From IMG/VR virus record IMGVR_UViG_3300032242_002041, positions 164,287-228,286 of that record: a stretch of 64,000 bases of DNA; one strand, given 5' to 3'. A program made the position numbers and the translations under genes. Shown here in pieces: positions 3,166-24,875 of the stretch; position 1 is the first letter of the stretch; each line of letters opens with the position of its first letter. The notes under the pieces were generated by a model. It worked only from the letters and a program-made list of their open reading frames with translations, made no database searches and was not told where the DNA came from.

Positions 3166-3879
3166 TTATTCTATATGTAATTGATCGTTTATGTTTTTAA
3201 TGATTTGTAATTTGGCATCGGCATTTCGACTACCATGCCAATGAACGATTCTGGATTCCTCAAGACGGCAACCATTCCAATTATCGGTATAGTCCTTGGC
3301 ATCTTGTGGCCCAGGCAACCAAGGTCCTTGATAGGCCATGTGTGGCATGCGAGCCTGTTCTATAGTTAGTCCTTGCTCCCACATCATTTTGTTCAGAATA
3401 ACCTGTTCGGTATTCCATTCTTCCATGTCCCAATTTTCTGCCATGTTCAAACCAAAATTCCAAATGTCTTGACTCATTTCGGCTGGATAGTATCTAACAT
3501 CGGCGTTGAAGAAATGTGGTATGTCTTGGAACTGTCTTGGATCAGTGTAGTTGAACATACGGAATTCTTTGAAATGGCCAAAGAAATCGACCGGTGCAAT
3601 GGCCTGCACGTCTATGCCACAGTATAAAATATTACAAGGCTCACTGCGCCACAGATCGTAAATTTCAAAAAAGTTTTTACGGAATGTATCTCTAATGTTA
3701 TCGGTTTCTTCGTTGTAAAAAACCAATTCCCAATCACCTTGAACAAAGCGTTTTAAACTTTTCAAAGTAATTTCGTGCATCTCCATATATTTGGAGTATA
3801 TGTCACCTTCGTCACTGCGATCCTTAAACCATTCTGGACTTTTAATTTTATGTAAACTGCGAACTAGATAATTTTTCAT
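3166..3879 (-). CDS. putative glycosyltransferase (GT-A/nucleotide-diphospho-sugar transferase-like)
   Basis: ILYCGIDV DxD-like motif, FNADV, EQVILN, IVHWHGS; located in sugar cluster. Confidence 0.6.
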   Translation of the reverse strand: MKNYLVRSLHKIKSPEWFKDRSDEGDIYSKYMEMHEITLKSLKRFVQGDWELVFYNEETDNIRDTFRKNFFEIYDLWRSEPCNILYCGIDVQAIAPVDFFGHFKEFRMFNYTDPRQFQDIPHFFNADVRYYPAEMSQDIWNFGLNMAENWDMEEWNTEQVILNKMMWEQGLTIEQARMPHMAYQGPWLPGPQDAKDYTDNWNGCRLEESRIVHWHGSRNADAKLQIIKNINDQLHIE

Positions 3880-4823
3880 TGTTGTAACCATTCTGTATGT
3901 TGAGAAGACCATTGAACAAATTGTTCAATGCCTGATGTGCCGGTATATTTAGGTTCAAATCCTGCGGCAAGTATTTTTTTGTTGCTGACGCTATACCTGG
4001 CACCGTGCCCTGGGCGATCTGCCGACTTTACTTCATACCGTAAATCTTGACCAAACAACTGACTGATATATTGAGCGGTGGTCAACAAAGGTTGCTCAGA
4101 GTCACCACCCAGGTTATAAGTATCTACAAATCCGTTCAATGGGCTATACAACAAGAACTGTATGGCTTGGGCACAATCTTCCACATGTAACCAAGCACGT
4201 TGATCGGTGTTGCCGTTGTGGTCTCCGTGTAAAGTTATGGTTTCTTGCTGTAATATAGAACGAACCACCAAACTAAAAAACTTGCCAGGCAATTGTCTGG
4301 CACCGTAGATATTTTGTGCTCGCAATATAGTACAAGGAATTTTATAACTTTGTGCCCAGGCCGATACCAACATTTCGCCTGCGGCTTTGGTGCCACTATA
4401 AGGACTACGACAATTTAGTGGGTCTTGTTCGGTCCAAGAATCGTTGTTGACGTTTGGGCCATACACTTCTCCGCTGGAAACGTAAATGAATCTTTTTAAA
4501 TTTTTACTGGTATGTGCGTATTCCAACATGTTGGCAGTCAAAACTACATTGTCCTCAACTGCCTTGAGTGGATCTTGTAACGTATCTCCTACCTGTGCAT
4601 TGGCTGCACAATGCACAATGTAATCAATTGCTATTGTTGTGGGAAGTTTTTGAACTAGGTCAACTCGGTCAGCAAAATCAGGATGGCTGTCAATGACCCA
4701 CTGTAATCGTTTGCTGATGTTTCTAATGACGCATACAATGTGGTAGTCTGTTTCTTTTAAAAAATAATCCAGTGCATGATGCCCCAGGAATCCTGTAGCG
4801 CCGGTTAGCAATAGAGTTGTCAC
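3876..4823 (-). CDS. NAD-dependent epimerase/dehydratase (RmlB-like SDR)
   Basis: GATGFLG, HCAA, SSGEVYG, YSGTK; GTG start overlapping the rmlC stop. Confidence 0.85.
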   Translation of the reverse strand: MTTLLLTGATGFLGHHALDYFLKETDYHIVCVIRNISKRLQWVIDSHPDFADRVDLVQKLPTTIAIDYIVHCAANAQVGDTLQDPLKAVEDNVVLTANMLEYAHTSKNLKRFIYVSSGEVYGPNVNNDSWTEQDPLNCRSPYSGTKAAGEMLVSAWAQSYKIPCTILRAQNIYGARQLPGKFFSLVVRSILQQETITLHGDHNGNTDQRAWLHVEDCAQAIQFLLYSPLNGFVDTYNLGGDSEQPLLTTAQYISQLFGQDLRYEVKSADRPGHGARYSVSNKKILAAGFEPKYTGTSGIEQFVQWSSQHTEWLQQ

Positions 4824-5341
4824 AGTGATTCCTGATCTACAAATTTGGGCCAAGCACGGTCTTTGTCACTGACTACCGCAGGTTCATGAAGCCAAGGCAG
4901 GCCAAGATCTGAATCGTTCCAGACAATGCCTGTTTCTGCGGTTGGTGCATAGTAGCCATCCAAGTGATACTGTATAACAGTGTCTGGCTCCAAGGTCAAT
5001 ACACCATGATAGCAACCGGGTGGAACTATTAACATACTAGGGTCTTGGTCAGTTAAAGTAAAACTAAAAATCTTACCGTAATTTGGACTATTTCGACGAC
5101 CATCGACAAATATGTCCTGTATGGTACCTTTGATCACTGAGATAGCTTTACAAGTGCGATTGGGCTGGCGCTGTGCGTGTAGGCCTCTAAGCGTATATGC
5201 TTTTTTGGTATAAGAAGTGTTGGTCTGCAAAAAGTCGTTAGCAAATCCTGCATCGGCAAGACGTTGCTTGTTATAAGTTTCACTAAACCATCCGCGATTG
5301 TCATGAAACTTTGTTAGGTTTACTAGTAGGTGATCTTGCAT
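4820..5341 (-). CDS. rmlC: dTDP-4-dehydrorhamnose 3,5-epimerase
   Basis: DNRGWFSE, TLRGLH, DGRRNSPNYG, VPPGCYHG, VSDKD. Confidence 0.9.
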   Translation of the reverse strand: MQDHLLVNLTKFHDNRGWFSETYNKQRLADAGFANDFLQTNTSYTKKAYTLRGLHAQRQPNRTCKAISVIKGTIQDIFVDGRRNSPNYGKIFSFTLTDQDPSMLIVPPGCYHGVLTLEPDTVIQYHLDGYYAPTAETGIVWNDSDLGLPWLHEPAVVSDKDRAWPKFVDQESL

Positions 5342-6381
5342 TAGATTTTAAGCCAGCGATCGTTTTTGAGTGTCCAAGTAACCATTTGTTTGATACGGGT
5401 GTCAAAATCATACTTGGGTTCCCAACCTAACCCTTTCATGTATTCGCCACTGAGACTGTAACGAAAATCGTTACCAGGACGCTCTGGATCGTGTCCTACC
5501 ATGACATATTTTAATTCTCGTCCTAGTAAGGTAGCAATTTTCTGGGCCACAACTAAATTACTAATTTCCAATTGACCAACAATGTTAAACTTGGGGCAAG
5601 TGGCACCGCCAAAGTCACTGGCCAGTGGAAAGCCCTTGTGTGGCAAGTCCATAATGAACATGGTGGCATCGGCTACATCTGCGGCATGCACCCAGTGGCG
5701 CAGTCCACTTTGAGTTCCTGTGGCTTCGTCACAGTAGATGACAACAGTTTCATCTGCCAATACCTTACGCACAACCAATGGAATAAACTTTTCTGGACTT
5801 TGACGCTCGCCAAACACGTTCATGGTGTGCGTACAGTAGATAGGCATGCCAAAGGTGTTTTCGTAGGCAATGCACAATTCTTCACCGCCGGCCTTGGTGG
5901 CACTATAAGGACTGCGACTGTTGTAGCGATCCCACTCTTGGTACTCCACACCTTCGGGGGCATCTCCAAACACTTCGTCTGTACCAAAATATATAAACTT
6001 TTCTAATTTGGGCAAATAATGTCTAGCGTAGTCCAACAGGTTACAGGTTCCTACCACGTTGTCTTGCACAAACATCATAGGGTTTTCGATCGAACGAGTA
6101 ACGTGGCTACCTGCGGCCATGTGAATGATAAAATCAACAGGACCAATTTGATGTGCCAACTGTGGGTTAATTTCGGCACGTAAATCATGATAAATGAACT
6201 TTAGGCGGCTCATGGCATCTGTGCCAAACTCTTGACTCAATTCATACAGTCGATTTAGATTGCCTGAAAAGTCCAAACGATCTAGACAGGTAATTTCATA
6301 TTCTTCGTGTTTGAGCAAGCGACGAATCATATGGTGCCCAATGAATCCTGCACCACCGGTTACTAATACAGTTTTTTTCAT
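5341..6381 (-). CDS. rmlB: dTDP-glucose 4,6-dehydratase
   Basis: GGAGFIG, AAGSHVTRSI, TDEVFG, SPYSATK, QSPEKFIP, RPGNDFRY. Confidence 0.9.
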   Translation of the reverse strand: MKKTVLVTGGAGFIGHHMIRRLLKHEEYEITCLDRLDFSGNLNRLYELSQEFGTDAMSRLKFIYHDLRAEINPQLAHQIGPVDFIIHMAAGSHVTRSIENPMMFVQDNVVGTCNLLDYARHYLPKLEKFIYFGTDEVFGDAPEGVEYQEWDRYNSRSPYSATKAGGEELCIAYENTFGMPIYCTHTMNVFGERQSPEKFIPLVVRKVLADETVVIYCDEATGTQSGLRHWVHAADVADATMFIMDLPHKGFPLASDFGGATCPKFNIVGQLEISNLVVAQKIATLLGRELKYVMVGHDPERPGNDFRYSLSGEYMKGLGWEPKYDFDTRIKQMVTWTLKNDRWLKI

Positions 6382-7764: not shown

Positions 7765-7840
7765 TTGTTTCTCCTATGTTAGATTATAGCATAGGCGGCA
7801 GAGTTTGTAAAGCGGGAGTGACGCCAAGACCGCTGTGAAT
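7765..7840 (-). promoter_or_regulatory. candidate riboswitch-like structured leader of queD
   Basis: AGCGG/CCGCU stem, loop GGCG complementary to downstream CGCC, competing CCUAUG/CAUAGG hairpin over the SD. Confidence 0.55.
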
Positions 7841-8368: not shown

Positions 8369-11020
8369 TTAATCTATCCAAAATCTAAGTTCGTGCATTA
8401 GTCGATATTGATTCTGCTGGGTTCCCATAACACTGAAACGATACATGGTCTTTTTATCAATCATGTTAGTGTATAATGCTCTAACATACGCTGTAGTTTG
8501 ATTCTGTATTGCTAGTTTTTTGTTAGTGTACACTATATTGCCGCTGTTGTCAACACCAGTCGGCATCTTTGCCTCCACATTGCCTGATAATACCACAGGC
8601 TTGACACCAGCATATACTCCAAGATCACCAAACTGATCTTCGGTATAACGATATCCGGTTTCAGCCCAAGCACCGACTATGTTATTAACCTTGGTTATTA
8701 ATCCTGGAGTAATGTTGGTTGTAACGTGCATCAAGCTGGCCTGTGTGCTAAAGCCACCATCTCGGTAAGTGGCCACATTGTCTAGGATGCCTGAATTGGT
8801 AACAGTGCCCCAAGCACCACCAAACGCCATCCAGGGATTGGTGTTTAGGTTGGTAAACTGAGCACCATAGGTAAACTTACCGTTTTTATAAATTTCTGGA
8901 ATACCTACAGAGTATTGTGTGGGCTTTTGTAGCATTCCAGGTCCTTGATCGTTACCAAAAAATGCATTACGATTTTCTGTAGCAACACGCATATTGCCAT
9001 AGGTTACTGGTGTGCCATTAACCAGATATTCTGCGTGGCTAGTTAAATTGTATTGATCAGTGTGTTCAGTGTTATAACCAAAACTATTCATGCCTGACAC
9101 ATTCATAAATTTAAGGTTGGTTGTAAACCCACGACCTACACTGTCAGTGACCAATGTATCGCTATCATCAAGCCCTAGACCCATTACGTATCCACGTATT
9201 GGTGCAAATCCTTTGCCACCACTTAGTGGTATTGACATATCGCCCACGGGCTGAAATACTTTAGTCGTGTCTAGTAAATTAAAACCAAAATAGTTAGTTG
9301 AGCTGGCTGCCAGCACGGTGTTGACTTGTGCATTACTCATCCACGGCCATACCTGTTTAATCGCCGTAACAGTTGCCTGAGTAGTGGTACTGGCCGTGTC
9401 TCCTAATTTGCTGAGATAGATAGCTTTTTGTTGTGTACCATTGCCGCTATAACTGATTGCTGTAGCAAGATACATGCTATTATCTGGCCCTTTAACAAAC
9501 ACAATACCATTGGCACCGCCGGCTGCACTGGCATTAATTGCCTTTTCAAGAGCCACCGATTGTCCTACAAAAGCATCAATGATGGCGGCATAGCTGGCCA
9601 CATATTTGTTTTCTTTAGTGTGTATTAATACTTGTGCGCCGGTAGTACTTCCCCAACCAGTTGCGGCTAATACGATGTCAGTTAACCCGTCGCCGTTAAC
9701 GTCTACAAGTTTAGGATTATAGTTTGCAGAAGTTTTAGTATCATACCCAACCAGGGTAGTATCAGTAACATCTATAAATGTGCCACCACCTTTGTTTTTT
9801 AAGAATTGTATCTCACTGAAGTCAGGCCATGCTCCATTAGTAAACCAAGGTCTACTAAAAATAACAGCACTAGTTAATCCAGAGTTGTCAAAGTCAAACG
9901 CTAACGCTCTATAATCGGTCGCTCCGCTAAAACCGTAACTATCCCATTTAGGTAAAAAGAATCTTGAGCCTGGCAAAGTACTGATCTTGGTTATTTCAAA
10001 GTCTAGTGTGCCGCGATTGGTGTCGGTCATAGCCCAGCTATATAAATTTGTGCTACAAGTTTTGCAACTAGTTACTCCAGAGTCTGTTAGAATAACCGTA
10101 CTAGTGCCGTTGCCCATAAAATCAGCAATAGCTACTGAAGCAGCAGATCCACCATAATCCAGCCCCGACACAGTATGAGCAACAAAATTATTAGTACGCG
10201 AACCAAATACAACCTTACTACCTGTTGTAAAGATATCGTCAATGCCATCACCGTTGATGTCGTAGACTGCACTGTCATGACCATTAATACCGAGTCCTAA
10301 ATCAACTCTAGTAAAACTTGAACCGTTATTAAGAAATAACCAACCAGATCCAATATTAGCACCATTATCTGTATTTGGTGAAACGTACATACTTTTTCTT
10401 CCACTACCATTAAAGTCACCAAACTTTACACTAGGTTCTGTACCTAAAATTACATTATCCGTTCCTGTGAACCATTTACTAGTTTTGTTTACTAACTGAC
10501 CGTTTTCCCAATCAAAAATGTTCAAATTATATGTAGGATAACTACCGCCATTGGTTGTACCAGAGCGACCTGCTGTAACAAGTTGTTGACCCGTTCCGGC
10601 AAGATTTTCAGCGTATAATGCACTTGAATCGTATTCGTACACTGCACTATTAATCGGAGTAACTGATCCAACACGAACCGGCGTGGCATATGGAACATAG
10701 GTATTTGTGGGTGTAGTGGTTGTGGGTGTAGTAGTGGGTGTAGTGGTTGTGGGTGTAGTGGTTGTAGTGGGTGCGGTAGTGGGTGTAGTGGTTGTAGTGG
10801 TTGTGGGTGTAGTAGTGGGTGTAGTGGTTGTGGGTGTAGTAGTGGGTGTAGTAGTAGGTGTGGTGGTTGTGGGTGTAGTAGTGGGTGTAGTAGTAGGTGT
10901 GGTAGGACCTGTACCTTGGGTAGGGGGCGCAGATGTACCTGGATTGTTTGCGCCTCCACCGCCGCCAGCACAAGCTACTAATTGTAGTACTACTGTTGCT
11001 AAAAGCAAAATCCGTTTCAT
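8369..11020 (-). CDS. large lipoprotein: Thr/Pro linker, FG-GAP/VCBS-like repeats, probable C-terminal beta-barrel
   Basis: Lipobox LVAC; DFNGSG, DINGDGIDD, DFMGNG, DFDNSG, DVNGDGLTD repeats; amphipathic beta-rich C-terminus ending LRFWID. Confidence 0.75.
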   Translation of the reverse strand: MKRILLLATVVLQLVACAGGGGGANNPGTSAPPTQGTGPTTPTTTPTTTPTTTTPTTTPTTTPTTTTPTTTPTTTTTTTPTTAPTTTTTPTTTTPTTTPTTTTPTNTYVPYATPVRVGSVTPINSAVYEYDSSALYAENLAGTGQQLVTAGRSGTTNGGSYPTYNLNIFDWENGQLVNKTSKWFTGTDNVILGTEPSVKFGDFNGSGRKSMYVSPNTDNGANIGSGWLFLNNGSSFTRVDLGLGINGHDSAVYDINGDGIDDIFTTGSKVVFGSRTNNFVAHTVSGLDYGGSAASVAIADFMGNGTSTVILTDSGVTSCKTCSTNLYSWAMTDTNRGTLDFEITKISTLPGSRFFLPKWDSYGFSGATDYRALAFDFDNSGLTSAVIFSRPWFTNGAWPDFSEIQFLKNKGGGTFIDVTDTTLVGYDTKTSANYNPKLVDVNGDGLTDIVLAATGWGSTTGAQVLIHTKENKYVASYAAIIDAFVGQSVALEKAINASAAGGANGIVFVKGPDNSMYLATAISYSGNGTQQKAIYLSKLGDTASTTTQATVTAIKQVWPWMSNAQVNTVLAASSTNYFGFNLLDTTKVFQPVGDMSIPLSGGKGFAPIRGYVMGLGLDDSDTLVTDSVGRGFTTNLKFMNVSGMNSFGYNTEHTDQYNLTSHAEYLVNGTPVTYGNMRVATENRNAFFGNDQGPGMLQKPTQYSVGIPEIYKNGKFTYGAQFTNLNTNPWMAFGGAWGTVTNSGILDNVATYRDGGFSTQASLMHVTTNITPGLITKVNNIVGAWAETGYRYTEDQFGDLGVYAGVKPVVLSGNVEAKMPTGVDNSGNIVYTNKKLAIQNQTTAYVRALYTNMIDKKTMYRFSVMGTQQNQYRLMHELRFWID
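10707..10905. repeat. low-complexity tandem repeat encoding a (PTTT/PTTTT)n linker
   Basis: Repeated gggtgtagtagt / gggtgtagtggttgt units inside the CDS. Confidence 0.95.
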
Positions 11021-11110: not shown

Positions 11111-11917
11111 TTATCTAGGCGCAAAGTCCTGTTGTAGTTTAATATTATCCATAAATTCTTTTTTAGTTCCAGGATCTGTATTAAACGCACCTTTAAGTAC
11201 TGTAGTCTGTGTTAGACTACTGTGCGCCATAATGCCTCGGTTTTCGCAACAACCGTGTGTAGCTTGAATATAAACTCCAACATTCTCACTGTCGGTTGCC
11301 CGCATTATTTCTCTCGCGATGTCATTGCATAGCTCTTCTTGCAAAGTACCACGCCTAGCGCACCACTGAGCTATCCTAGTATATTTGCTAAGACCAATGA
11401 GTTTATTTGCGGCAATAATACCAATATAAGCAACACCACTGACAGGTTGATGGTGATGACTACACATGCTACGGAGCTCACTACGAACCACAAGCATACC
11501 TTCGTAACGATCCGCTGAGTCATTTGGAAAAGCTGTTGCATCTGGTGCTGGATCATATCGACCTCCCATAATTTCGTTATAATACATTTTAGCTAGACGT
11601 CTAGCGGTACCTTTACTGTTAGGATCATTTTCACGATCAATTAATAGTGTGTCCAGTACCTGTTCAAATGCCACCGTGGCTTCATTGATTAGTTGTTCTT
11701 TATCACCTTCATGTAAATAATCACTGATATTATCGCCTGCCCAGAAACGCTTCTTATCACGTTTCATCTTAAAGCGGATAGCATCGGCTAAATTTGCTTC
11801 TTTATAGCCCTTATCGTCCATGCCAACATCTTCATAGCCTGGGTGATACGGTGCTTCTTCTACTAATTTAGAATTAGCCAATGCGTTTTTTAAGTCTTCT
11901 GATGTAAATGTTGTCAA
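11111..11917 (-). CDS. folE: GTP cyclohydrolase I
   Basis: SMCSHHHQP, IGLSKYTRI, LQEEL, HGCCENRG; TTG start. Confidence 0.95.
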   Translation of the reverse strand: MTTFTSEDLKNALANSKLVEEAPYHPGYEDVGMDDKGYKEANLADAIRFKMKRDKKRFWAGDNISDYLHEGDKEQLINEATVAFEQVLDTLLIDRENDPNSKGTARRLAKMYYNEIMGGRYDPAPDATAFPNDSADRYEGMLVVRSELRSMCSHHHQPVSGVAYIGIIAANKLIGLSKYTRIAQWCARRGTLQEELCNDIAREIMRATDSENVGVYIQATHGCCENRGIMAHSSLTQTTVLKGAFNTDPGTKKEFMDNIKLQQDFAPR

Positions 11918-11981
11918 TTCTTTTTCTCCGAGTTATAGGGTCGTGGATGACCAGTCTTGTTACTATTGTAACAGTTATTTA
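11918..11981 (-). promoter_or_regulatory. folE leader: TAAATA plus small SD-involving pseudoknot
   Basis: GGUC-AUCCAC-GACC hairpin whose loop UCC can pair with GGA of the SD (CUCGGAGA); an overlapping TAGACA-17-TACAAT promoter extends to 11993. Confidence 0.5.
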
Positions 11982-11997
11982 GACCGTTGTCTACAAG

Positions 11998-12591
11998 TTA
12001 ATCAATTATTTTAATTTTTCGGCAATCTGGATATGCTATGAATTTAGGCGCTTCGTTAACCAGTGGCAGTAATTGACTTCCTAATTCTGCTTCTTCCGTT
12101 GTGGGTTTATAGTGATAACCTACGTGGAACACTTCTTGTGCTTGCCAGGGCACAATCCTCAGGTCACGACCATCATAGCGTTGAGCCAACATTACCTTGT
12201 AGGCCACAGGATCATCTAGCAAGATAGCACCACAGCGACCAATCTCTAATGGCTTGGTGCGCCCAAAACTTACACAAGTTAATGTGCCAGGACGATACAT
12301 GTTGCGCTCTAATCTGCGAGCACTATCCCAAATCCTAGTAAATTCAAATTTATATTCACCAATCCATTCTTGTCTGTTTGGGTGTTCGTGATAACTGTAC
12401 TTGATACCCAGCTTGTGCATGGTCATAGGCACACTCAAATATGTAAAAGGAGTAAAACAAGTTTCTTTTACACGGTCGTATCTCATACATAATTCAATAG
12501 CATGAGTACAACAGTCAGTCATTACAGTATAAGGAGCACCTGTGTACTCGGCTAACTCTTGTTCAAATTTTAGTATACTGTCAAAGCTCAT
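11998..12591 (-). CDS. short DegT/DnrJ-like PLP aminotransferase
   Basis: FEQELAEYTGAPY.V..DCCTHAIELC, DSA, SFGRTKPL..GRCGAIL. Confidence 0.75.
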   Translation of the reverse strand: MSFDSILKFEQELAEYTGAPYTVMTDCCTHAIELCMRYDRVKETCFTPFTYLSVPMTMHKLGIKYSYHEHPNRQEWIGEYKFEFTRIWDSARRLERNMYRPGTLTCVSFGRTKPLEIGRCGAILLDDPVAYKVMLAQRYDGRDLRIVPWQAQEVFHVGYHYKPTTEEAELGSQLLPLVNEAPKFIAYPDCRKIKIID

Positions 12592-13538
12592 TGATTATAC
12601 CACTTCCATACATGGTTAATTATATCTGTCATAACAAATTTTGGTTGCCAGCCACTGACCTTTGTAAACTTGCCAGCATCAGCTGTTAGAATAGCTGGGT
12701 CACCTTCGCGCTTTGGTCCATGTAACATGGGAATATTAACGCCGGTAATCTGTGCAGACGCACGAACAATTTCAAGATTACTATATCCAGTGTTAGTACC
12801 GAGATTATAGATGTCGCTAGGAATAGTTCGATCCATTGCCAAGATATGTGCCTCGGCCAAGTCTTCCACGTGAATATAATCACGAATACAAGTGCCATCT
12901 GGTGTAGGATAATTAGTTCCATACAAAGTAAAATCTTGTTTGTTTTTAACTGATTCTAATACTCGAGCAATAATATGTGTTGCACCTGCGGCTTGTCCAT
13001 GCCGGGCTAGGCTATCTGCACCACACGCATTAAAATAACGAAAACTCACATAGTCTAAACCATAAGCACGATGATAACTGGCCAACATCCAATCAATCAT
13101 CAACTTGCTTTCGCCATACGGGCTGATCGGTTCTTTGGGATCAATTTCCTGCACAGGAGTTATGACGGGATTGCCGTAGGTTGCAGCACTGCTACTAAAA
13201 ATAAATCTAACTTGTTTATCGTGATTCCTAATCAAATAGTCTAGTAGGATTTTAGTTTTGATAAAATTGTTGTTGTAGTACTCTTGAGGATCTTGCATAC
13301 TAGGACCAACTAAGCTGGTACCAGCACAATGAATAACAGCGTCTGGACAAAATCGCTTGATAGCATCCAGCCCTAGCTCAGCTGCAAAGTCTCCAGTATG
13401 CCACTGGCACGGAACAGGAATCAAGTTACCAGGAGGCATTACCCGATCAATCGCTAATACATCGTGCCCGTCATCCACTAATTTTAATAATGTTTCCCCG
13501 CCAATGAATCCAGCAGCACCAGTGACTACTACTTTCAT
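12588..13538 (-). CDS. galE: UDP-glucose 4-epimerase
   Basis: GAAGFIG, FSSSAATYG, YGESK, RYFNACGA, DGTCIRDYIHV. Confidence 0.9.
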   Translation of the reverse strand: MKVVVTGAAGFIGGETLLKLVDDGHDVLAIDRVMPPGNLIPVPCQWHTGDFAAELGLDAIKRFCPDAVIHCAGTSLVGPSMQDPQEYYNNNFIKTKILLDYLIRNHDKQVRFIFSSSAATYGNPVITPVQEIDPKEPISPYGESKLMIDWMLASYHRAYGLDYVSFRYFNACGADSLARHGQAAGATHIIARVLESVKNKQDFTLYGTNYPTPDGTCIRDYIHVEDLAEAHILAMDRTIPSDIYNLGTNTGYSNLEIVRASAQITGVNIPMLHGPKREGDPAILTADAGKFTKVSGWQPKFVMTDIINHVWKWYNQ

Positions 13539-14970: not shown

Positions 14971-15432
14971 TTAAATTACAGTTGATTGTGTTGGACGAGT
15001 AAGATTATAACTAATGGAGCATCCGTTCTCGCCGTCTTCGGATACTTCAATTACTACAGCACGACCGGGATAGCGTTCGGCTATCTTTAAATATAAATCA
15101 TCGGCAATCATTTCACATGATTTCCAGTCTAGTTCTAAAACGGGATTCGAAACAATTCCGTTATTGGAATAGAGATTTTCAAGCCACCGTTTGAATTGGA
15201 TGAATTCGATATCTCTGTCGTTATGGAAGACATCGATTGACACCCGGAAATGAAAGATATGGCGATGAGGACTGGCCAAAAACGATACATCATATTCTCC
15301 TGCTGTGCATAATGCTGGGTCTGTTGCAGCCGCTGGATAGCGATGAATGCCTTCCTTACGGAATGTAACCCAAATTTGTCTCTGGGCTGCCGCTTTAATG
15401 CGTTCAATAGTTTCGCGTTCTTGTTGTATCAT
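14971..15432 (-). CDS. dpdL: QueD-like T-fold protein, probable CDG decarboxylase DpdL
   Basis: LASPHRHIF matches LxxxHRHxF; DRDIEFI, SCEMIA, VSEDGENG; second QueD paralogue in the cluster. Confidence 0.75.
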   Translation of the reverse strand: MIQQERETIERIKAAAQRQIWVTFRKEGIHRYPAAATDPALCTAGEYDVSFLASPHRHIFHFRVSIDVFHNDRDIEFIQFKRWLENLYSNNGIVSNPVLELDWKSCEMIADDLYLKIAERYPGRAVVIEVSEDGENGCSISYNLTRPTQSTVI

Positions 15433-16604
15433 TTCTGGTGGCTTTCTATATTAGTATTATTAAACGAGTCAATGGCATCATACATATCTGGAAAAATTGC
15501 ACGACTATTTAATTTTCTATCTTGGTCTAATTTGTTAAATTCTTCTACTGTATATTCAAGTCCGTCCCAATTGGATTTATAGGGAGTTCGATCGTCGTTT
15601 AACGAGGCAATTACGTTGTCAATGCCAAGAATATTTGAATAATCATTTTTAGAAATTCGCTGTCTAACCAACTCTCTCTGGTGATCAGTTAGTCGTTGAA
15701 TTGCCCACGGACCACCATTATCTCTCAGATTGTAGATATTAATAGTTATTGCTCGATGAGATATATTCAAAGTTTGATGCACCAAATCAATAAAATCCCA
15801 AATTGACAACGAGTTAATATTCATAAACACCATGTTAAAACTAAGGTGATGCTTTGCAATCAAGTTAATTGTGTGTAAATTTTCTAAGAAAACATTCCAT
15901 TTTCCGGGCCAACGAATATATTCATATTGTTCTGCAATTGATTCTCCGCTAACTAACCATTGTACATTACTAAACTGTTTCAACAATTCAAAAATTTTAT
16001 TTTCGTGTATTAGGCTAAGATTAGTATTAACACAAATACGACAAGATTTATTAACTTCTAATAATTTTCTTAAGACTATTTCGTTTTCTTTTATCATCAA
16101 CGGCTCGCCACCAGCAAGATATATTTCTTTAAGGTCGGCAGCAGATTCTAAAACATAATCTAACAAATCTCCTTTGGCTTCTTTCATCTTAACTACTTGA
16201 TATTTCTGTTCGGCCCATAGTGAGCTGAGCTCAGGGTCACAATATATGCAGGCAAAATTGCAGGTATTGTTCCAACGCAAATCAAGATATTTTAAATTAA
16301 AGTTATCAATATTGTTGTAAAACTCATCACCAAGATGGTTATATTTCTTTTTAAAATGATGTTGTAAAGTATGAGTACCAATCTGAGAGTGGCAATTTTT
16401 ACACCCTTCAACCGGAATATCATTTAACATCATTGTTTTGATATCGAGATTATTAGAGCCGCTTATTGTGTCTTTGATTGCAGGAGTTTTATTAATATTA
16501 CCTAATTTATTTTTACTCACACAACAATTTTCTATATTGCCTTGGGGGTCAATATACAGTGAAACCCACGGCGCTGGACAGAAATGTTTATTATCTATGG
16601 TCAT
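15429..16604 (-). CDS. radical SAM protein with N-terminal SPASM/twitch-like Cys domain
   Basis: FCPAPW..CC..GCKNC, then CNFACIYC, AGGEP. Confidence 0.85.
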   Translation of the reverse strand: MTIDNKHFCPAPWVSLYIDPQGNIENCCVSKNKLGNINKTPAIKDTISGSNNLDIKTMMLNDIPVEGCKNCHSQIGTHTLQHHFKKKYNHLGDEFYNNIDNFNLKYLDLRWNNTCNFACIYCDPELSSLWAEQKYQVVKMKEAKGDLLDYVLESAADLKEIYLAGGEPLMIKENEIVLRKLLEVNKSCRICVNTNLSLIHENKIFELLKQFSNVQWLVSGESIAEQYEYIRWPGKWNVFLENLHTINLIAKHHLSFNMVFMNINSLSIWDFIDLVHQTLNISHRAITINIYNLRDNGGPWAIQRLTDHQRELVRQRISKNDYSNILGIDNVIASLNDDRTPYKSNWDGLEYTVEEFNKLDQDRKLNSRAIFPDMYDAIDSFNNTNIESHQK

Positions 16605-17442: not shown

Positions 17443-17641
17443 TTTGTTCTGTATTATAATGGGTGGATGGATTATTTTCTTGTTTAAGTATAACAATTTG
17501 TTTTTTTAATTGCAACCTTTGTTTCTTCAAATCAGTTAGTTCAACATCATCAAACACACCGGTGCTTTCCAAACCGTCAATTCTTTTGTTGAGTGCGTGG
17601 TGTGCTTCTTCTAAATGTTTAATTCTTCTTTCCCAAGACAT
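17435..17641 (-). CDS. small coiled-coil protein (YdcH/DUF465-like)
   Basis: HHALNKRI...LKKQRLQLKKQI pattern. Confidence 0.6.
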   Translation of the reverse strand: MSWERRIKHLEEAHHALNKRIDGLESTGVFDDVELTDLKKQRLQLKKQIVILKQENNPSTHYNTEQND

Positions 17642-19341
17642 TAGGCCTCCAGATTATCTAGTTTTGATTCATCTAAATCGGCATCATCTCCATCAATGCC
17701 ATCGTTTGATTCCTCTACTTCAAATAATGCATTAAATTGACTGTGTGCGTTTTTGGCTTTTTTACCTTTGAATCCGCGTGTGCCTACAATGTCCATCCAG
17801 TAACGATCATAAGACTCAATAATGGCTTCGGCTTCGGCACGATCAGGCGTAGCAAAGATGGCTTCTACAATGTCTTTAAATCGTGTATGATCTCCGTTTT
17901 GATCCCACATCATGGCGGGCCAAGATCCGTTGTCATATTCACGATTAGCTCTTTGTACAGCTTCTAGGTGCATCCAAACATTATGGCCCATTAGTAATGC
18001 ATAACTAAAACTATCCCACGATGTCTTGCCTTCTTTGCCAATCTTGTTCAACATACCAGGTTGATAGTAACAAACATCCTTCATTTGTAACTGTAGACTG
18101 ATTGGACTCTCGTCAAAGTGATCAACAAGACCATCGGCTACTACCGCTTGTCCATACGGACGAGTATCTGTTGAATACTTTTTATCGTCCGCAATTGGAC
18201 TCATTCGATAGCACCACTTTTCGTTGTGTGGAAGGTCGATGTGGTGGTAGACTTGCCCATTTGCTGTAGCCAAAAACGGCGAAGCACAATCAAAACTAAT
18301 AGTAAAAGAAGGATTAACATACTTACGAACTGCACGTTGAATGTCTGTAAGTAATACTGCCCACTCTAATTTACTTGTGCCCAAGAAGTGCATCCAATCA
18401 TGCACACCTTCTTTTAACAAGCCATCGTGGCGTAATGCTACAAGTCTACGCAGGACCAAATGCACATCGCACATGTTCTGACCACCCATTGACCAACCAT
18501 CAAAGTGTGTGTCTGGGTATATGGCAGGGTCACAATAGTGTTTCATTGTTTCATACCAACGATCTGCGTCAGCGTGATTGGCACCTTGTAAAACATTAAG
18601 AACTTTCATGCCACCATTCTTGGCGCCCTTGCGGTGCTTCATGTAATAGTCATTATTATATTTGGTAGCAGCCACAGCTTCTTCTAGTGTAGTAATGCCA
18701 CACTTGGCGCTGGCGTGTTTGTCATGTATGACCCAGGTTGGTATATCAAGTGTCATACCATAGTCGGCAACACCATCTAACCATTTGAGTACAGCTTCAC
18801 GTTTCTTCTGTGCAGCATCTAATAGATTTTGATAATTTTTAACATGATCAATCTTAATGTATTTGGTATTACCATTCTTATCGTGCTTGGGGGTACCATC
18901 GGGTTTAAGATCCGGCACATGCTCAACACCCTTGGCCCGGAGCTCGGCCATCTTGGCCAACACCACTGGACTTGTTGGGTCGCGCCACTCACCTTCCCAT
19001 AGACCTTTGGCAATTTGGAATCCACCTGAGTCGCCTAGCATTACAGTGCCAGGTTCACGATTACGAACCATATCCTCTGACCAGTCTTGTTTGGTTAGAT
19101 CCAAGTTGGCATGTCCACCCGAATACAAAGACCACTTATATGGAAATAAGCTCTTGGCGCTGTTAAGCCAGTTCATCATTTCCATATCTTTCATGCCAGC
19201 TGGCATACGAGTTTTTGGGTCTACATACGGTCCGTTTACTGGATCTCGTTGTTTACCTATGTAAGTGGCATAGAAACCACTAATAGCTGGCAAGAACACA
19301 GCATAATCGTTTTGTTTGGCTGTAAGATTATCTTGAGTCAT
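17641..19341 (-). CDS. dpdA: divergent tRNA-guanine transglycosylase-like protein (DpdA family, probably DpdA3-type)
   Basis: DSGGFQ, MTLDIP, VLQG, HFLGTS, SFDCASP TGT core motifs; in folE/queD/queE cluster. Confidence 0.8.
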   Translation of the reverse strand: MTQDNLTAKQNDYAVFLPAISGFYATYIGKQRDPVNGPYVDPKTRMPAGMKDMEMMNWLNSAKSLFPYKWSLYSGGHANLDLTKQDWSEDMVRNREPGTVMLGDSGGFQIAKGLWEGEWRDPTSPVVLAKMAELRAKGVEHVPDLKPDGTPKHDKNGNTKYIKIDHVKNYQNLLDAAQKKREAVLKWLDGVADYGMTLDIPTWVIHDKHASAKCGITTLEEAVAATKYNNDYYMKHRKGAKNGGMKVLNVLQGANHADADRWYETMKHYCDPAIYPDTHFDGWSMGGQNMCDVHLVLRRLVALRHDGLLKEGVHDWMHFLGTSKLEWAVLLTDIQRAVRKYVNPSFTISFDCASPFLATANGQVYHHIDLPHNEKWCYRMSPIADDKKYSTDTRPYGQAVVADGLVDHFDESPISLQLQMKDVCYYQPGMLNKIGKEGKTSWDSFSYALLMGHNVWMHLEAVQRANREYDNGSWPAMMWDQNGDHTRFKDIVEAIFATPDRAEAEAIIESYDRYWMDIVGTRGFKGKKAKNAHSQFNALFEVEESNDGIDGDDADLDESKLDNLEA

Positions 19342-20067: not shown

Positions 20068-20098
20068 ATAATTCTCCTTGTTGTTGATTGTACGTGGT

Positions 20099-21058
20099 TT
20101 ATTTAGATTCTGCAACGGGTTTAGGTAATATTTGTGCCAAGGCCTGGCCACCACGGTATGATTGCCATTTTCCTGGTTTACGAAATTCTATCCAGGTCCA
20201 CGGCCCGTTGTCGTGATAGGTAAAGTGTTGTTCAAATCCTAAACTTTCAGCAAACGATAGAATCAGTGACCCCGGTGTGTACAGCCCTGTTGTTGCTTCA
20301 ACTGCTTTGACCCCTTCCCATCGATCACAGTCATTAAAGGTCATTAAGAGCATGCCCCCTGGGCGCATCTTTCTATAAAGTTCTATTAGGTATTGACGAA
20401 TTATTTCAAAAGGTCTATGGTTAAAATAATTCCAAGCAAGTACTAATCCAAATTGATTATTGGGCAATTGCCACAATATATCCTGATCTTGATCTTCTCG
20501 TATTGTGTAAGTTCGTAATCTACGTTGATATGCTTCATTGAACTGTGATAAAACTGGTTTTAACAGTTCATAATCTTCGTCAACAAGATATATAGGATCA
20601 TTGTTAACCATGTTGTGTATCCAAGATTCTACTCCAGGACGCAAAATCATAGTTGTATTTTGCCAACCAGAAACTCGCGTAATGCGATTTATGAGAAGTT
20701 CTCGAGTCTGGTCTGATACAGGCAAACGACTACTAAGAACATTATTAACATACTCGTTTGGGTCTCTCCATTTGTACCAACTATATCGATAAGAACGAAA
20801 TTCTTCATATGTTTTATAACTATTTTGTAGGTATGGCTGTTCTTCTTTTCTAATTTGATCGTATACTTGACGTTTAATAGTGTTGAATGCACTTTCAAAT
20901 TGATCAAATGAATTTAGTACATCGGAACGCAGATTTTCTAATTCTGAATGCTGAGATATTTGAATAATTTTTTGTAATTCTGCGTCAGCAAACCGTTTGG
21001 CATCTATTGCGGTTATAGAACACAGTTGATTGTAGTAGTTAACTAGATCGCTTAACAT
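20099..21058 (-). CDS. class I SAM methyltransferase-like protein
   Basis: FGLVLAWNYFNH...LYRKMRPGGMLL motif. Confidence 0.55.
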   Translation of the reverse strand: MLSDLVNYYNQLCSITAIDAKRFADAELQKIIQISQHSELENLRSDVLNSFDQFESAFNTIKRQVYDQIRKEEQPYLQNSYKTYEEFRSYRYSWYKWRDPNEYVNNVLSSRLPVSDQTRELLINRITRVSGWQNTTMILRPGVESWIHNMVNNDPIYLVDEDYELLKPVLSQFNEAYQRRLRTYTIREDQDQDILWQLPNNQFGLVLAWNYFNHRPFEIIRQYLIELYRKMRPGGMLLMTFNDCDRWEGVKAVEATTGLYTPGSLILSFAESLGFEQHFTYHDNGPWTWIEFRKPGKWQSYRGGQALAQILPKPVAESK

Positions 21059-21059
21059 A

Positions 21060-23717
21060 TTACCACTCAAATAAAGTTTGGAAGGTATTTTCGGTGTTAG
21101 TAGCTGCCGCTAGATCCCATTCCAACACACCTAACAAATTGTCTAATTTTTGATCTACCACTGTGGCTTCCATTTCGCTGTCATCAAATGGTAGTTCTTT
21201 AAACCACGTAGGAAGATGTGTTTCATCAGTAGGATAACCTATTGACGTCCAGCCCAGTGGGTTTGCTTTAAGTTTGCAAACAATAGTTTTCATGCCATCT
21301 ACAATTTGCATACTATACTTGTCACTGTTCATACGACGCAAATTGTTCCAGTTAAGTGCGGCACGGACATGTCCTGGCATGTTGGCTTTGCCTAGGCGTT
21401 CTTCTTCCTTGCCATATTTGGTCAAGTTGTTTACACGCTTAGGACTACCCTTTTCCCAACCTGGACGTTCTTTGAACTTGTACTTGAACTCGCGAATCTT
21501 TTCAATGATTTCTTCACGACTTGTGCCAATTAGTACCTCATCAAGAATTTGACTTAGGAATTCTTGAATAACCTTAGGAGTATCACTACGCTTGAGATCT
21601 AATCCCATGGCTTTTACTTTACCCGGTGATCCGTGTGTGTCTACACGCTTGTTTTCTTTGTCGTAGTACATGACAGCATACCGCTTTTTAGTAATAAACA
21701 AGCCTTTACTGGCAACAATCTCACGTCCACCTTTAATAACATCGCCCATCTCCCTAGGCACGTGAAATGCTTGTTCCATAAAACCTGGAAAGCTATCGTT
21801 AACTTGATCAGCAATACTGTTATACAGTCGAACGGCAATTTCACGACTCCAGGTCATGTTGCCTGCTTCTATTTCTTTTTGTAGTACAGGATACGCTGTA
21901 AAATAACACGAGTCTGTATCACCATATATAATTGCCTCGCCTACGTGATCATACACACCTGTGATACATTCGTTCACATACGCATCCATATGCCGGGCAA
22001 TTGCACGACCAGTAAGAGTTGTGGATTGACCAATACGCTTATCAAAGAAACGGCAACCAGGATTAAGAATAGCACCATAGAGACTGTTGAGGTTAATCTT
22101 TTTAACAAGTTGACGCTTGTCCCAGTATTCTTCATCTTCTGCATTTTTACACTCCTTTAATCGGGCCTGCATCTCTTTACGTTCAGCATACCAACGTTTT
22201 AACAATCCTGGAATAACAGCTTCCTTCTCATAGGTAAAGATAGTACCGTTAGCGGTAATCATCCAAGGATGATTGCTATCAAAAATTATCTTCCATATGT
22301 CAGCGGCACTGTGTACACTCTCCTCACCGTCTTTCCAGTCAATGGTAATTTCTGTACCTACTTCGGTATTCATGACTGCTTCGTATTCTAAACTTCCAAA
22401 CAGGCCTTCCCATGCCCCGGCAAATGAGCTACCTGCTCGCATCTTATCACCAATATAGCGTTCAGTCATTATAGGTCGGAGTTGTCCTACAATAGTTTCA
22501 GGTCCCATATTAAGTGCTCTAATAGCACTTGGATACAGTGAGTTAATATCTATACTACCTACATACTCGTGTATGCCTTTTTTTGGAAACGCAACATAGG
22601 CACCTGCGGCTTGTGTGTCTTCATCCGAATAGCGTTCCTTGCGATTAGGCACAACCATACCACGCTCGTGTGCTTCGTTAATAATTGCTTGTTCTGTTAC
22701 AGCTACAGCACCCATTGTAGTTTGTAGTAACACTGTGTTTTCGTGTGCTAGGGTATTGGCCAAATCCAAGAACTTTAATTTCTTATCCAGCTTGGCAAGA
22801 ATCATTGTGTCCTGACGGTTATATTCGATAAACTTTTTAAAGTTTTGATTGTACAATTGATCAAGTGTGCCTTCAAACACCGTCTTGGTTTCTTGTAACT
22901 CATATTCAGCAATAGCATCCAAACTATAACTATGGCGTTCTTCGTATGTGTACTTGCGATACAGTTGCATATAGTCCATATGCACACGACCAATTAAATC
23001 GTAGGTTTCGTTTTCTGCACCAAAGCGTTCGAACATACGTTTCTTAGGGTACTGGTTCCACAGGCAAAATCTGCGTGTATCATCCTTGCTGAGAATACGT
23101 GTAACACGATTTACTGTGTAGGGTATATCATAACCCTCTGAGTTCCAACCGGATAGTGCATCGGCGTCTTCGATAAGGTCCAAGAATGTTTTTAACATTT
23201 CATCTTCACGCTCAAAGACGACGCAGTTTTCAAACTCCTTGGCAATTTCGTTCGCAGTTGCACGACTCATATGCTTGGGCGGAACAACTAGCGTGACCAT
23301 TTGATCGAGCCATTGCAAGTAGACCGAGATTGCAGTGATAGCATTAAATGGATCTGTTGTTGGTGAGAAACCACGTTCGGGATCAAAGTCTACTTCAATG
23401 TCAAAGAATGCTACGTTTAACTTGGGACCATCTTGCCCTTTGTAGTTTTCTTCTAAGCACCGAAAGATTGGATTGATATCACTCTCATACAGTTGCTTGC
23501 CTGACTGTATGCGAATTTCTTTACGAAACTCTTTGTTGTTGCGTGTGCTGAATCTACTGACAGGTGTGCCGAATAGGCTTAGGAATTTACCACGAGGATC
23601 CTCGTAATAAAATACATAGTTGGCCGGATATTCTTGATAGGTTCTACGTCCATCCTTCCGTTCAACTACATGAATACGATCGTGTTCACGATCAAATAGT
23701 GCATCTACATAACTCAA
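21060..23717 (-). CDS. polB: family B DNA polymerase
   Basis: FFDIEV ExoI, WNSEGYD, DINSLYPS, KINLNSLYG, YGDTDS, KKRY; TTG start. Confidence 0.97.
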   Translation of the reverse strand: MSYVDALFDREHDRIHVVERKDGRRTYQEYPANYVFYYEDPRGKFLSLFGTPVSRFSTRNNKEFRKEIRIQSGKQLYESDINPIFRCLEENYKGQDGPKLNVAFFDIEVDFDPERGFSPTTDPFNAITAISVYLQWLDQMVTLVVPPKHMSRATANEIAKEFENCVVFEREDEMLKTFLDLIEDADALSGWNSEGYDIPYTVNRVTRILSKDDTRRFCLWNQYPKKRMFERFGAENETYDLIGRVHMDYMQLYRKYTYEERHSYSLDAIAEYELQETKTVFEGTLDQLYNQNFKKFIEYNRQDTMILAKLDKKLKFLDLANTLAHENTVLLQTTMGAVAVTEQAIINEAHERGMVVPNRKERYSDEDTQAAGAYVAFPKKGIHEYVGSIDINSLYPSAIRALNMGPETIVGQLRPIMTERYIGDKMRAGSSFAGAWEGLFGSLEYEAVMNTEVGTEITIDWKDGEESVHSAADIWKIIFDSNHPWMITANGTIFTYEKEAVIPGLLKRWYAERKEMQARLKECKNAEDEEYWDKRQLVKKINLNSLYGAILNPGCRFFDKRIGQSTTLTGRAIARHMDAYVNECITGVYDHVGEAIIYGDTDSCYFTAYPVLQKEIEAGNMTWSREIAVRLYNSIADQVNDSFPGFMEQAFHVPREMGDVIKGGREIVASKGLFITKKRYAVMYYDKENKRVDTHGSPGKVKAMGLDLKRSDTPKVIQEFLSQILDEVLIGTSREEIIEKIREFKYKFKERPGWEKGSPKRVNNLTKYGKEEERLGKANMPGHVRAALNWNNLRRMNSDKYSMQIVDGMKTIVCKLKANPLGWTSIGYPTDETHLPTWFKELPFDDSEMEATVVDQKLDNLLGVLEWDLAAATNTENTFQTLFEW

Positions 23718-23788
23718 ATTTTTCTCCGTTTATGGCCGGTTAGCCATGATTCATGCTCCTTATGGGAGCGACTCAGTAAATATTTATA
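23718..23788 (-). promoter_or_regulatory. polB TATAAATA promoter and two-hairpin leader (putative translational operator)
   Basis: TATAAATA 23781-23788; GCUCC/GGAGC and AUGGC/GCCAU stems; loop CCG complementary to CGG at the SD. Confidence 0.55.
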
Positions 23789-23801
23789 TACACAACTCGA
23801 C

Positions 23802-24875
23802 TCAGTTAAAATTTCCTTCAAACCATGTGTCCGGAAGTAACTTTGCCTGGTTAATTAAATCTAATGCTATAATTTTTTCTGGATGTAAATTATTAAAAAC
23901 ATCGTGAGTTTTAAATTCATGTTTATCCCAGGTATTCCAATTGGTCAGTCGAGAGTATTCAACTCGATCAACATTGTATAGCTTGCACAGACTGTAAAAT
24001 TCAAGAATTTCTCGAAAGTTAGATTGTTGCACAATCATTCGAGTATTAAACTTGAATCCTACTGCCTCTTTTTTATTTTTTAAAAATTCCAAAGACCTTA
24101 AAATGTCTGGCCACTGGCCACCGCGTCTAATTTTTTCATATGTATCGGGTCTAGCTGCATCAACTGATATAGTTACATTACTAATTGCTGATTCTATGTG
24201 TTTGACTCTATGCCAATTTTTTTCAGCCAATAAGCCATTACTGTGTAAACTTATTGCTATGTTTGGAAAGTCTTTTAAATTTAATAGTCCCAAAAAACTT
24301 TGTATCATAGGACTAGAAAAAACTTCTCCAGCGCCACTGGTTACTAAGTGTATACGTTGACTAGATGGTTTTGAAAAAATATTTTGAAAGATACGTTGAC
24401 TAATTTCTTCTTGTCTAGCTATATCTTCCTCACTGATTTTGGTTACCTTTGTTCTACAACTAGGACAACTAAGATTGCAGGTAGAATCAACATTTAACGC
24501 AATTTCGTAAGGCATGTCATGTAGACTGGCATCTTCGATTTGCCGAGCTACATTTAACGGAAGAGTGTCCGCGGTGTTTAAATTGCCATTGATTATTAAT
24601 GCACATTGATTCTCGTCGCAATAATCATAAGTGCCATCTATAATGCTTTGTCTGATGCGTTGTGCTTTTGGAGACGACAGCATCTGTTCCAGTGTTTCGG
24701 TTAAAATATTTCCAATTCTGGTATCGCCCCAACCGGGACAGGGGCAAAGATGAACTTCGCCTATGACACTGATGTGTATGTTTATAAACGGACTAAGACA
24801 AAAGTAACCTTTAAGATTCTTAGGAGGAAACTTTTTCTTATCTATAAACACCACCGGAACAGCTACAGAGTTCAA
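23802..24875 (-). CDS. radical SAM protein with N-terminal SPASM/twitch-like domain
   Basis: FCLSPF..CPC..YCDENQC, CNLSCPSC, GAGEVF. Confidence 0.85.
   Translation of the reverse strand: MNSVAVPVVFIDKKKFPPKNLKGYFCLSPFINIHISVIGEVHLCPCPGWGDTRIGNILTETLEQMLSSPKAQRIRQSIIDGTYDYCDENQCALIINGNLNTADTLPLNVARQIEDASLHDMPYEIALNVDSTCNLSCPSCRTKVTKISEEDIARQEEISQRIFQNIFSKPSSQRIHLVTSGAGEVFSSPMIQSFLGLLNLKDFPNIAISLHSNGLLAEKNWHRVKHIESAISNVTISVDAARPDTYEKIRRGGQWPDILRSLEFLKNKKEAVGFKFNTRMIVQQSNFREILEFYSLCKLYNVDRVEYSRLTNWNTWDKHEFKTHDVFNNLHPEKIIALDLINQAKLLPDTWFEGNFN

Follow-up and report, generated by a model that had tools for sequence, protein, structure and literature searches.

Does the short hairpin that lies just ahead of the ribosome-binding site of a phage GTP cyclohydrolase I (folE) gene have a function, and if so, does it control the translation of that gene? 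The locus is present in IMG/VR virus record IMGVR_UViG_3300032242_002041, a 228-kb record that is estimated to be 66% complete, and the window that we analyzed is the 64,000-nucleotide stretch from position 164,287 to position 228,286 of that record. The initial annotation, made from sequence alone, described a mini-pseudoknot in which loop UCC can pair with the GGA of the Shine-Dalgarno sequence (SD), followed by a weak UUG start codon, and compared it with the preQ1-I riboswitches. The sequence is exactly as described, on the minus strand, and all genes around it lie on that strand (Table 1). The UUG codon opens a 268-aa open reading frame that matches Pfam GTP_cyclohydroI (PF01227) with an E value of 8e-39, and the N terminus from this UUG is conserved in relatives.

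Table 1. Window coordinates of the folE leader and of the other features mentioned in the text
Feature	Coordinates	Strand	Sequence or description
-35-like hexamer	11988-11993	-	TAGACA
Late-promoter-like element in the promoter spacer	11976-11982	-	CTAAATA
Extended -10	11965-11973	-	TGtTACAAT
Palindrome overlapping the -10 hexamer	11958-11973	-	TGTTAC-AATA-GTAACA
Whole described string, hairpin to start codon	11915-11952	-	
P1 5' strand	11949-11952	-	GGUC
Loop	11943-11948	-	AUCCAC
Proposed P2 5' strand	11945-11947	-	UCC
Final loop bases, directly before the P1 3' strand	11943-11944	-	AC
P1 3' strand	11939-11942	-	GACC
Linker L3, conserved core AACUC	11930-11938	-	CUAUAACUC
Shine-Dalgarno	11926-11929	-	GGAG
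Proposed P2 3' strand	11927-11929	-	GGA
Spacer	11918-11925	-	AAAAAGAA
Start codon	11915-11917	-	UUG
folE	11111-11917	-	GTP cyclohydrolase I
Covariance model hit	11923-11955	-	35.1 bits, E 5.8e-7
Gene just upstream of folE	11998-12591	-	truncated DegT-like ORF, 197 aa
PTPS/QueD-like gene	7764-7249		
Leader of the QueD/PTPS gene	about 7765-7830		promoter plus SD
ORF with weak QueE-like N terminus	2666-1767		
DSGGFQ protein	17641-19341	-	566 aa
Second composite CTAAATA promoter	about 20080-20106	-	precedes a phrog_12062 gene
Leader of the DNA polymerase gene	23715-23760	-	hairpin plus SD
Family-B DNA polymerase gene	23717-21060		TTG start
Epimerases/dehydratases	12588-13538, 5341-6381, 3876-4853		sugar-nucleotide enzymes
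dTDP-sugar epimerase	4820-5341		sugar-nucleotide enzyme
SPASM radical-SAM genes	15429-16604, 23802-24875		

Taken alone, the structure in the window is no better than chance. The minimum-energy fold of the leader is just the 4-bp hairpin (-4.8 kcal/mol), and the leader as a whole is less structured than shuffled versions of itself (z = +1.2). No Rfam family matches: scans of 11 kb and of the 106-nt leader alone, at E values up to 10, gave no hit to the PreQ1 or THF-II models and only a spurious plus-strand hit (L25 leader, 12.8 bits). This hit falls on the promoter palindrome, which is conserved only among the closest relatives (the GGTC stem class). The case for the element therefore rests entirely on comparison.

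Aligning folE leaders of related phages had been proposed beforehand as the check on the motif, and we found that the motif is conserved. Among FolE relatives in viral contigs, 55 of 80 upstream regions showed the same hairpin, loop, and tail, with different stem sequences. We then dropped the gene and scanned viral contigs for the pattern ATCCWC-N5-11-AACTCGGAGAA, which returned 119 loci. In 110 of these, a FolE open reading frame starts a few bases after the match; in 4, there is a 129- to 132-aa open reading frame whose stop overlaps the folE start; 1 is a folE with an in-frame TAG; 3 are cut by the contig end, with nothing readable downstream; and 1 is a chance match. In phages such as L106 (548-934) and L121 (1479-1874) (L numbers are our labels for the sequences compared), and also in L111, L176, L067, and L069, the 129- to 132-aa protein of unknown function lies between the motif and folE, and its stop overlaps the folE start (TAATG), so that the motif heads a two-gene operon there. 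The folE with the in-frame TAG (L120, about 10150-10200, minus strand) is interrupted after 17 codons (...AGIR*WAGDNISEF...), which could be a sequencing error, a pseudogene, or recoding. The same pattern in 596 Gb of prokaryote genomes, where about a thousand chance matches are expected, gave at least 120 matches; none of the 120 seen has folE nearby and all look like chance, although absence is not proven by such a sample.

The motif also precedes a second FolE clade that is only about 40% identical to that of the window, and motif-bearing folE genes have at least 18 upstream and 32 downstream neighbor families, so the neighbors are not conserved. A covariance model built from 93 unique copies hits the window once and the whole 228-kb record once. 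It finds one hit per whole jumbo-phage record where the hairpin exists and none where it does not. In contrast, a megablast search of the locus against cultured phages found nothing, the closest FolE genes from cultured phages (Sinorhizobium Phosso, Rhizobium RHph_I1_18, Vibrio 2.275.O, and phage NCTB) lack the motif, and a blastn search of the motif against phage records gave only chance hits inside genes. The observation made in the initial annotation thus holds: the hairpin is real and recurs in hundreds of uncultivated aquatic phages, almost only before folE.

The stem (P1) covaries strongly. In 123 unique sequences, the three inner pairs are paired in 123 of 123, using 9 pair types: C-G in 115, A-U in 5, and G-C in 3 at the first; U-A in 58, A-U in 51, C-G in 13, and G-C in 1 at the second; and G-C in 123 at the third. 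A fourth pair is formed in 79% of copies, with four pair types. The covariation score is 0.291, against 0.075 for shuffled partners (0 of 500 shuffles reach it) and at most 0.095 when partners are slid, and RNAalifold predicts the same stem independently. The loop is AUCCAC in 75 copies, AUCCUC in 47, and other in 1. Loop position 5 is A or U, rarely C, and never G, and no association of this position (A or U) with other columns was found. Rare loop variants occur in L393 (about 1440-1490), L395 (476-507), and L390 (1442-1472): AUCCAU with a degraded SD (CAGAGAG), AUCCCC, and GUCCUC; the first looks like a decaying copy. The linker ends in AACUC, or in AACAUC in one stem class, and AAC(U/A)(C/U) is invariant or nearly so. 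The SD is CGGAGA in 122 of 123 copies. The distance from the loop to GGA is 11 nt in 106 of 123 but 13 nt in the window, where the hairpin ends 9 nt before GGAG (11 nt in most relatives). The UUG start is shared by about 60% of the 123 relatives.

Whether the loop pairs with the SD is less clear. Both UCC and GGA are invariant in 93 of 93 aligned sequences, so that this alignment carries no information either way, and the SD is constrained by the ribosome in any case. Elsewhere there is some support. Three distinct sequences of one lineage (L400/L403, L447, and L453) have the loop ACCC(U/A)C together with CGGGAG, whereas their sister L441 has AUCCUC with CGGAG, which is a U-A to C-G exchange at one position of the proposed 3-bp P2. 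L041 has the loop AUACCUC with UAGGAA, which allows CCU to pair with AGG. In addition, a G at loop position 5, which is never seen, would lengthen P2 by pairing with the conserved C before GGA. We count this as one clear evolutionary event and one looser one, which is suggestive but not proof. An alternative, pairing of loop AUCC with GGAU of the 16S rRNA, was set aside, because the ACCC/GGGAG lineage would break it while keeping the intramolecular pairing. A hairpin like that of T4, closing around AAUAACUC, was rejected since at most 2 bp are possible. A terminator was also rejected, because there is no U tract and the only terminator-like call is on the opposite strand.

The promoter upstream of the hairpin is a composite. 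A consensus scan found a near-consensus sigma-70-like -35/-10 pair with a 17-bp spacer (10 of 12 positions, with TG), and CTAAATA is centered in this spacer. Relatives carry TTGACA or TTGCAA at the place of the -35 hexamer and TATAAT or TACAAT as the -10. CTAAATA is the late-promoter motif reported for the T4-like phage Aeh1 (PMC1524935). It is present within 127 nt upstream of the hairpin in 203 of 232 unique motif contexts, against 2 and 6 for control words. The word CTAAATA-N4-6-TAYAMT occurs only 1 to 2 times per jumbo-phage record, and one copy is always at folE; in the window, the second copy precedes the phrog_12062 gene, which lies upstream of the DSGGFQ protein. In the whole record, for example at genome positions 207762, 197191, 183638, 45578, 44181, and 33057 (minus strand), CTAAATA often sits just after terminator-like hairpins or 4 to 6 nt before an ATG. 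This is consistent with a T4-type late promoter, and some genes may be nearly leaderless.

How might such an element work? It lies at -35 to -9 relative to the start codon, inside the 30S binding region. In the explanation that we favor, it is a cis-acting RNA element consisting of a 3- to 6-bp hairpin (core G-N-C/G-N'-C) with the loop A-UCC-(A/U)-C, a linker of about 7 nt ending in AACUC, and the SD, in which the loop would pair with the first three SD bases to give an H-type pseudoknot of roughly 29 nt that hides the ribosome-binding site and so lowers folE translation. A weak UUG start would lower it further. About 15 invariant bases are not explained by Watson-Crick pairing, the spacing is strictly kept, and the element is tied to one metabolic gene across unrelated genomic contexts, a pattern shown by riboswitches and autogenous operators; this points to an effector that sets the stability of the pseudoknot. 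The most likely effector would be a metabolite with a guanine-like face made downstream of FolE (a 7-deazaguanine or pterin intermediate), read by the invariant C that precedes the P1 3' strand, as in preQ1-I riboswitches, and giving feedback repression. As FolE is the first enzyme toward preQ0 and also toward pterins, such feedback is a coherent model. What our comparisons establish is that the element exists, that it is folE specific, and that P1 is selected, and of this we are nearly certain. P2 is only partly established, and a pseudoknot that sequesters the SD and lowers translation is somewhat more likely than not. The effect on translation, the existence of an effector, its binding, and its identity are inferred; a small-molecule effector is possible but doubtful, and the whole chain taken together remains tentative. 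No RNA sequencing runs were found that contain the locus. Close relatives have lost only the hairpin while keeping AACUCGGAGAA (L002 and L008), so it is dispensable.

The interpretation in the initial annotation is partly supported: the hairpin is a selected RNA structure tied to folE, the loop-SD pairing has some comparative support, and the comparison with preQ1-I is apt in architecture, whereas feedback control remains an inference. The remark that two genes of one pathway each have a structured leader was not borne out for the QueD/PTPS gene, whose leader is a plain promoter plus SD, and the model finds no second copy of the element. The deazaguanine pathway itself is only partly detectable in the window: FolE, PTPS, a weak QueE-like N terminus, and a TGT-like lead, but no QueC, as the Pfam QueC hit is an NAD synthase. 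The TGT-like lead is the protein with the DSGGFQ motif, which has no Pfam, PHROG, or PDB sequence hit; its language-model neighbors in the Atlas include a TGT-like cluster (0.92), so that it may be a divergent DpdA-type transglycosylase, and CTAAATA lies 4 nt before its ATG. In five related jumbo records, PTPS is present in all five, whereas QueC and Pfam TGT were not detected, including in two FolE-containing records that are 96 to 100% complete, so the end product of the pathway, and with it any ligand, is uncertain. The window also holds a run of sugar-nucleotide enzymes and two SPASM radical-SAM genes, and the DegT-like protein just upstream of folE matches only the first roughly 60 positions of the DegT/DnrJ/EryC1 aminotransferase family, so it is a shortened relative.

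The closest known architecture is that of the preQ1-I riboswitch (RF00522), especially type III (E. coli yhhQ leader, PDB 8FZA). That riboswitch is a very small H-type pseudoknot lying directly on the SD, and the folE element, whose P1 is clearly supported but whose P2 is only proposed, would have the same form. Type III uses a short pyrimidine-rich loop and a 3-bp P2 with the first SD bases, pairing CCU with AGG (PMC10622847), where the folE element would pair UCC with GGA and L041 CCU with AGG. In preQ1-I, the C directly before the P1 3' strand is the specificity base and is preceded by A (types II and III) or U (type I) (PMC11625349), and the folE loop ends in AC in 75 and UC in 47 of 123 copies. 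The preQ1-I riboswitch is linked to the 7-deazaguanine pathway, whose first enzyme is FolE. However, the folE element is not a member of that family: besides giving no hit with the Rfam model, its loop is 6 nt instead of 9 to 12, L1 is a single A instead of the UU(C) of types I and III, AACUC or AACAUC stands where type III has 4 to 5 conserved adenines directly before P2 (PMC10622847), so that the poly-A tract and UU motif that build the preQ1-I pocket are absent, and the top P1 pair is C-G rather than G-C. It has been found only in phage contigs and before folE, not before queCDEF, queT, or yhhQ. The THF-II riboswitch (the folE motif, RF02977) is a cis-regulatory RNA in front of folE that occludes the SD, as is proposed for this element, but it is a longer hairpin of about 50 nt with internal loops, found in bacteria, and is not a pseudoknot. 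Minimal viral H-type pseudoknots, such as the beet western yellows virus frameshift signal, have similar size and proportions (28 to 29 nt, a short S2 of 3 bp, and a linker of about 7 nt with adenines crossing the S1 minor groove), but those act on elongating ribosomes inside coding sequence, whereas this one sits on an initiation site.

The main alternative, although unlikely, is a translational operator bound by a protein that recognizes the conserved loop and linker and blocks the adjacent SD. The protein could be FolE itself (autogenous control, like T4 gp43 or gp32 on their own mRNAs), a distally encoded phage RNA-binding protein, or a universal host factor. A variable stem with an invariant loop is typical of protein-binding hairpins, and the only gene that always travels with the motif is folE. 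The T4 gene 43 (DNA polymerase) operator has the same layout, a small hairpin immediately 5' of the SD. In the T4 record (L612, 5900-5945, minus strand), this operator, AGCCU-AAUAACUC-GGGCU, shares the 10-mer AAUAACUCGG with the linker plus SD of several folE leaders (L007, L009, L011, and L024) and 7 nt (AACUCGG) with the consensus. In T4, however, the shared string is the hairpin loop plus the 3' stem, whereas in the folE leaders it is the single-stranded linker plus the SD. The effector in T4 is the gene's own protein. The similarity may be chance. The DNA polymerase leader of this phage has a superficially similar layout, with a 5-bp hairpin, AUGGC[UAACCG]GCCAU, then AAAC, then GGAGAAAAAUUUG, the hairpin lying right before CGGAGAAAAA-UUUG; its loop CCG could pair with CGG at the SD. 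This recalls the T4 gene 43 operator and hints at protein-type operators in this phage. On the other hand, the joint change of loop and SD is expected for RNA-RNA pairing and not for a protein site, although a protein could still stabilize the fold. GTP cyclohydrolase I is not known to have RNA-binding activity, the motif is the same in FolE clades that are only about 40% identical, and no conserved partner gene lies nearby.

It is also possible, though again unlikely, that the element is a constitutive structure, a tuner or stabilizer with no effector. Minimal H-type pseudoknots of this size, such as the luteovirus frameshift pseudoknots, can be stable alone, the hairpin lies about 10 to 20 nt from the likely transcript start in many loci, and its loss is tolerated in some relatives. 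However, a stabilizer or tuner would not need the many invariant unpaired bases, the fixed 11-nt spacing, or the restriction to one gene per genome, and the distance to the promoter-like element is bimodal (about 25 or about 75 nt), so that it is not a 5'-terminal hairpin everywhere. A role in DNA, as an inverted-repeat operator or a cruciform or hairpin site next to a promoter, is very unlikely, because the arms vary freely while complementarity is kept, the asymmetric spacer (the loop) is conserved, and the element is always in the sense orientation at a fixed distance from the SD of folE.

SD-sequestering H-type pseudoknots are already known, but this element is absent from Rfam 15, and our literature searches, limited to the papers that could be searched, found no description of it. 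Even as an orphan motif, it is a well-populated, gene-specific structured RNA from uncultivated aquatic phages. It has a real, though on present evidence doubtful, chance of being a new riboswitch class, or a fourth, miniaturized type of preQ1-I, of about 29 nt and so far phage only, which would sense a 7-deazaguanine or pterin intermediate and throttle GTP cyclohydrolase I, the entry enzyme for phage DNA hypermodification. That would make it the smallest natural aptamer known and the first riboswitch tied to a phage DNA modification pathway. If it binds a ligand, it would push down the lower size limit of natural aptamers and give a compact sensor for deazaguanine or pterin metabolites, and it would also give a handle on which product these FolE-plus-PTPS phages, many without QueC, actually make. 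If it is a regulator, it shows that phages control the first step of GTP-derived deazapurine or pterin synthesis at the level of translation, using a portable RNA module of about 30 nt.
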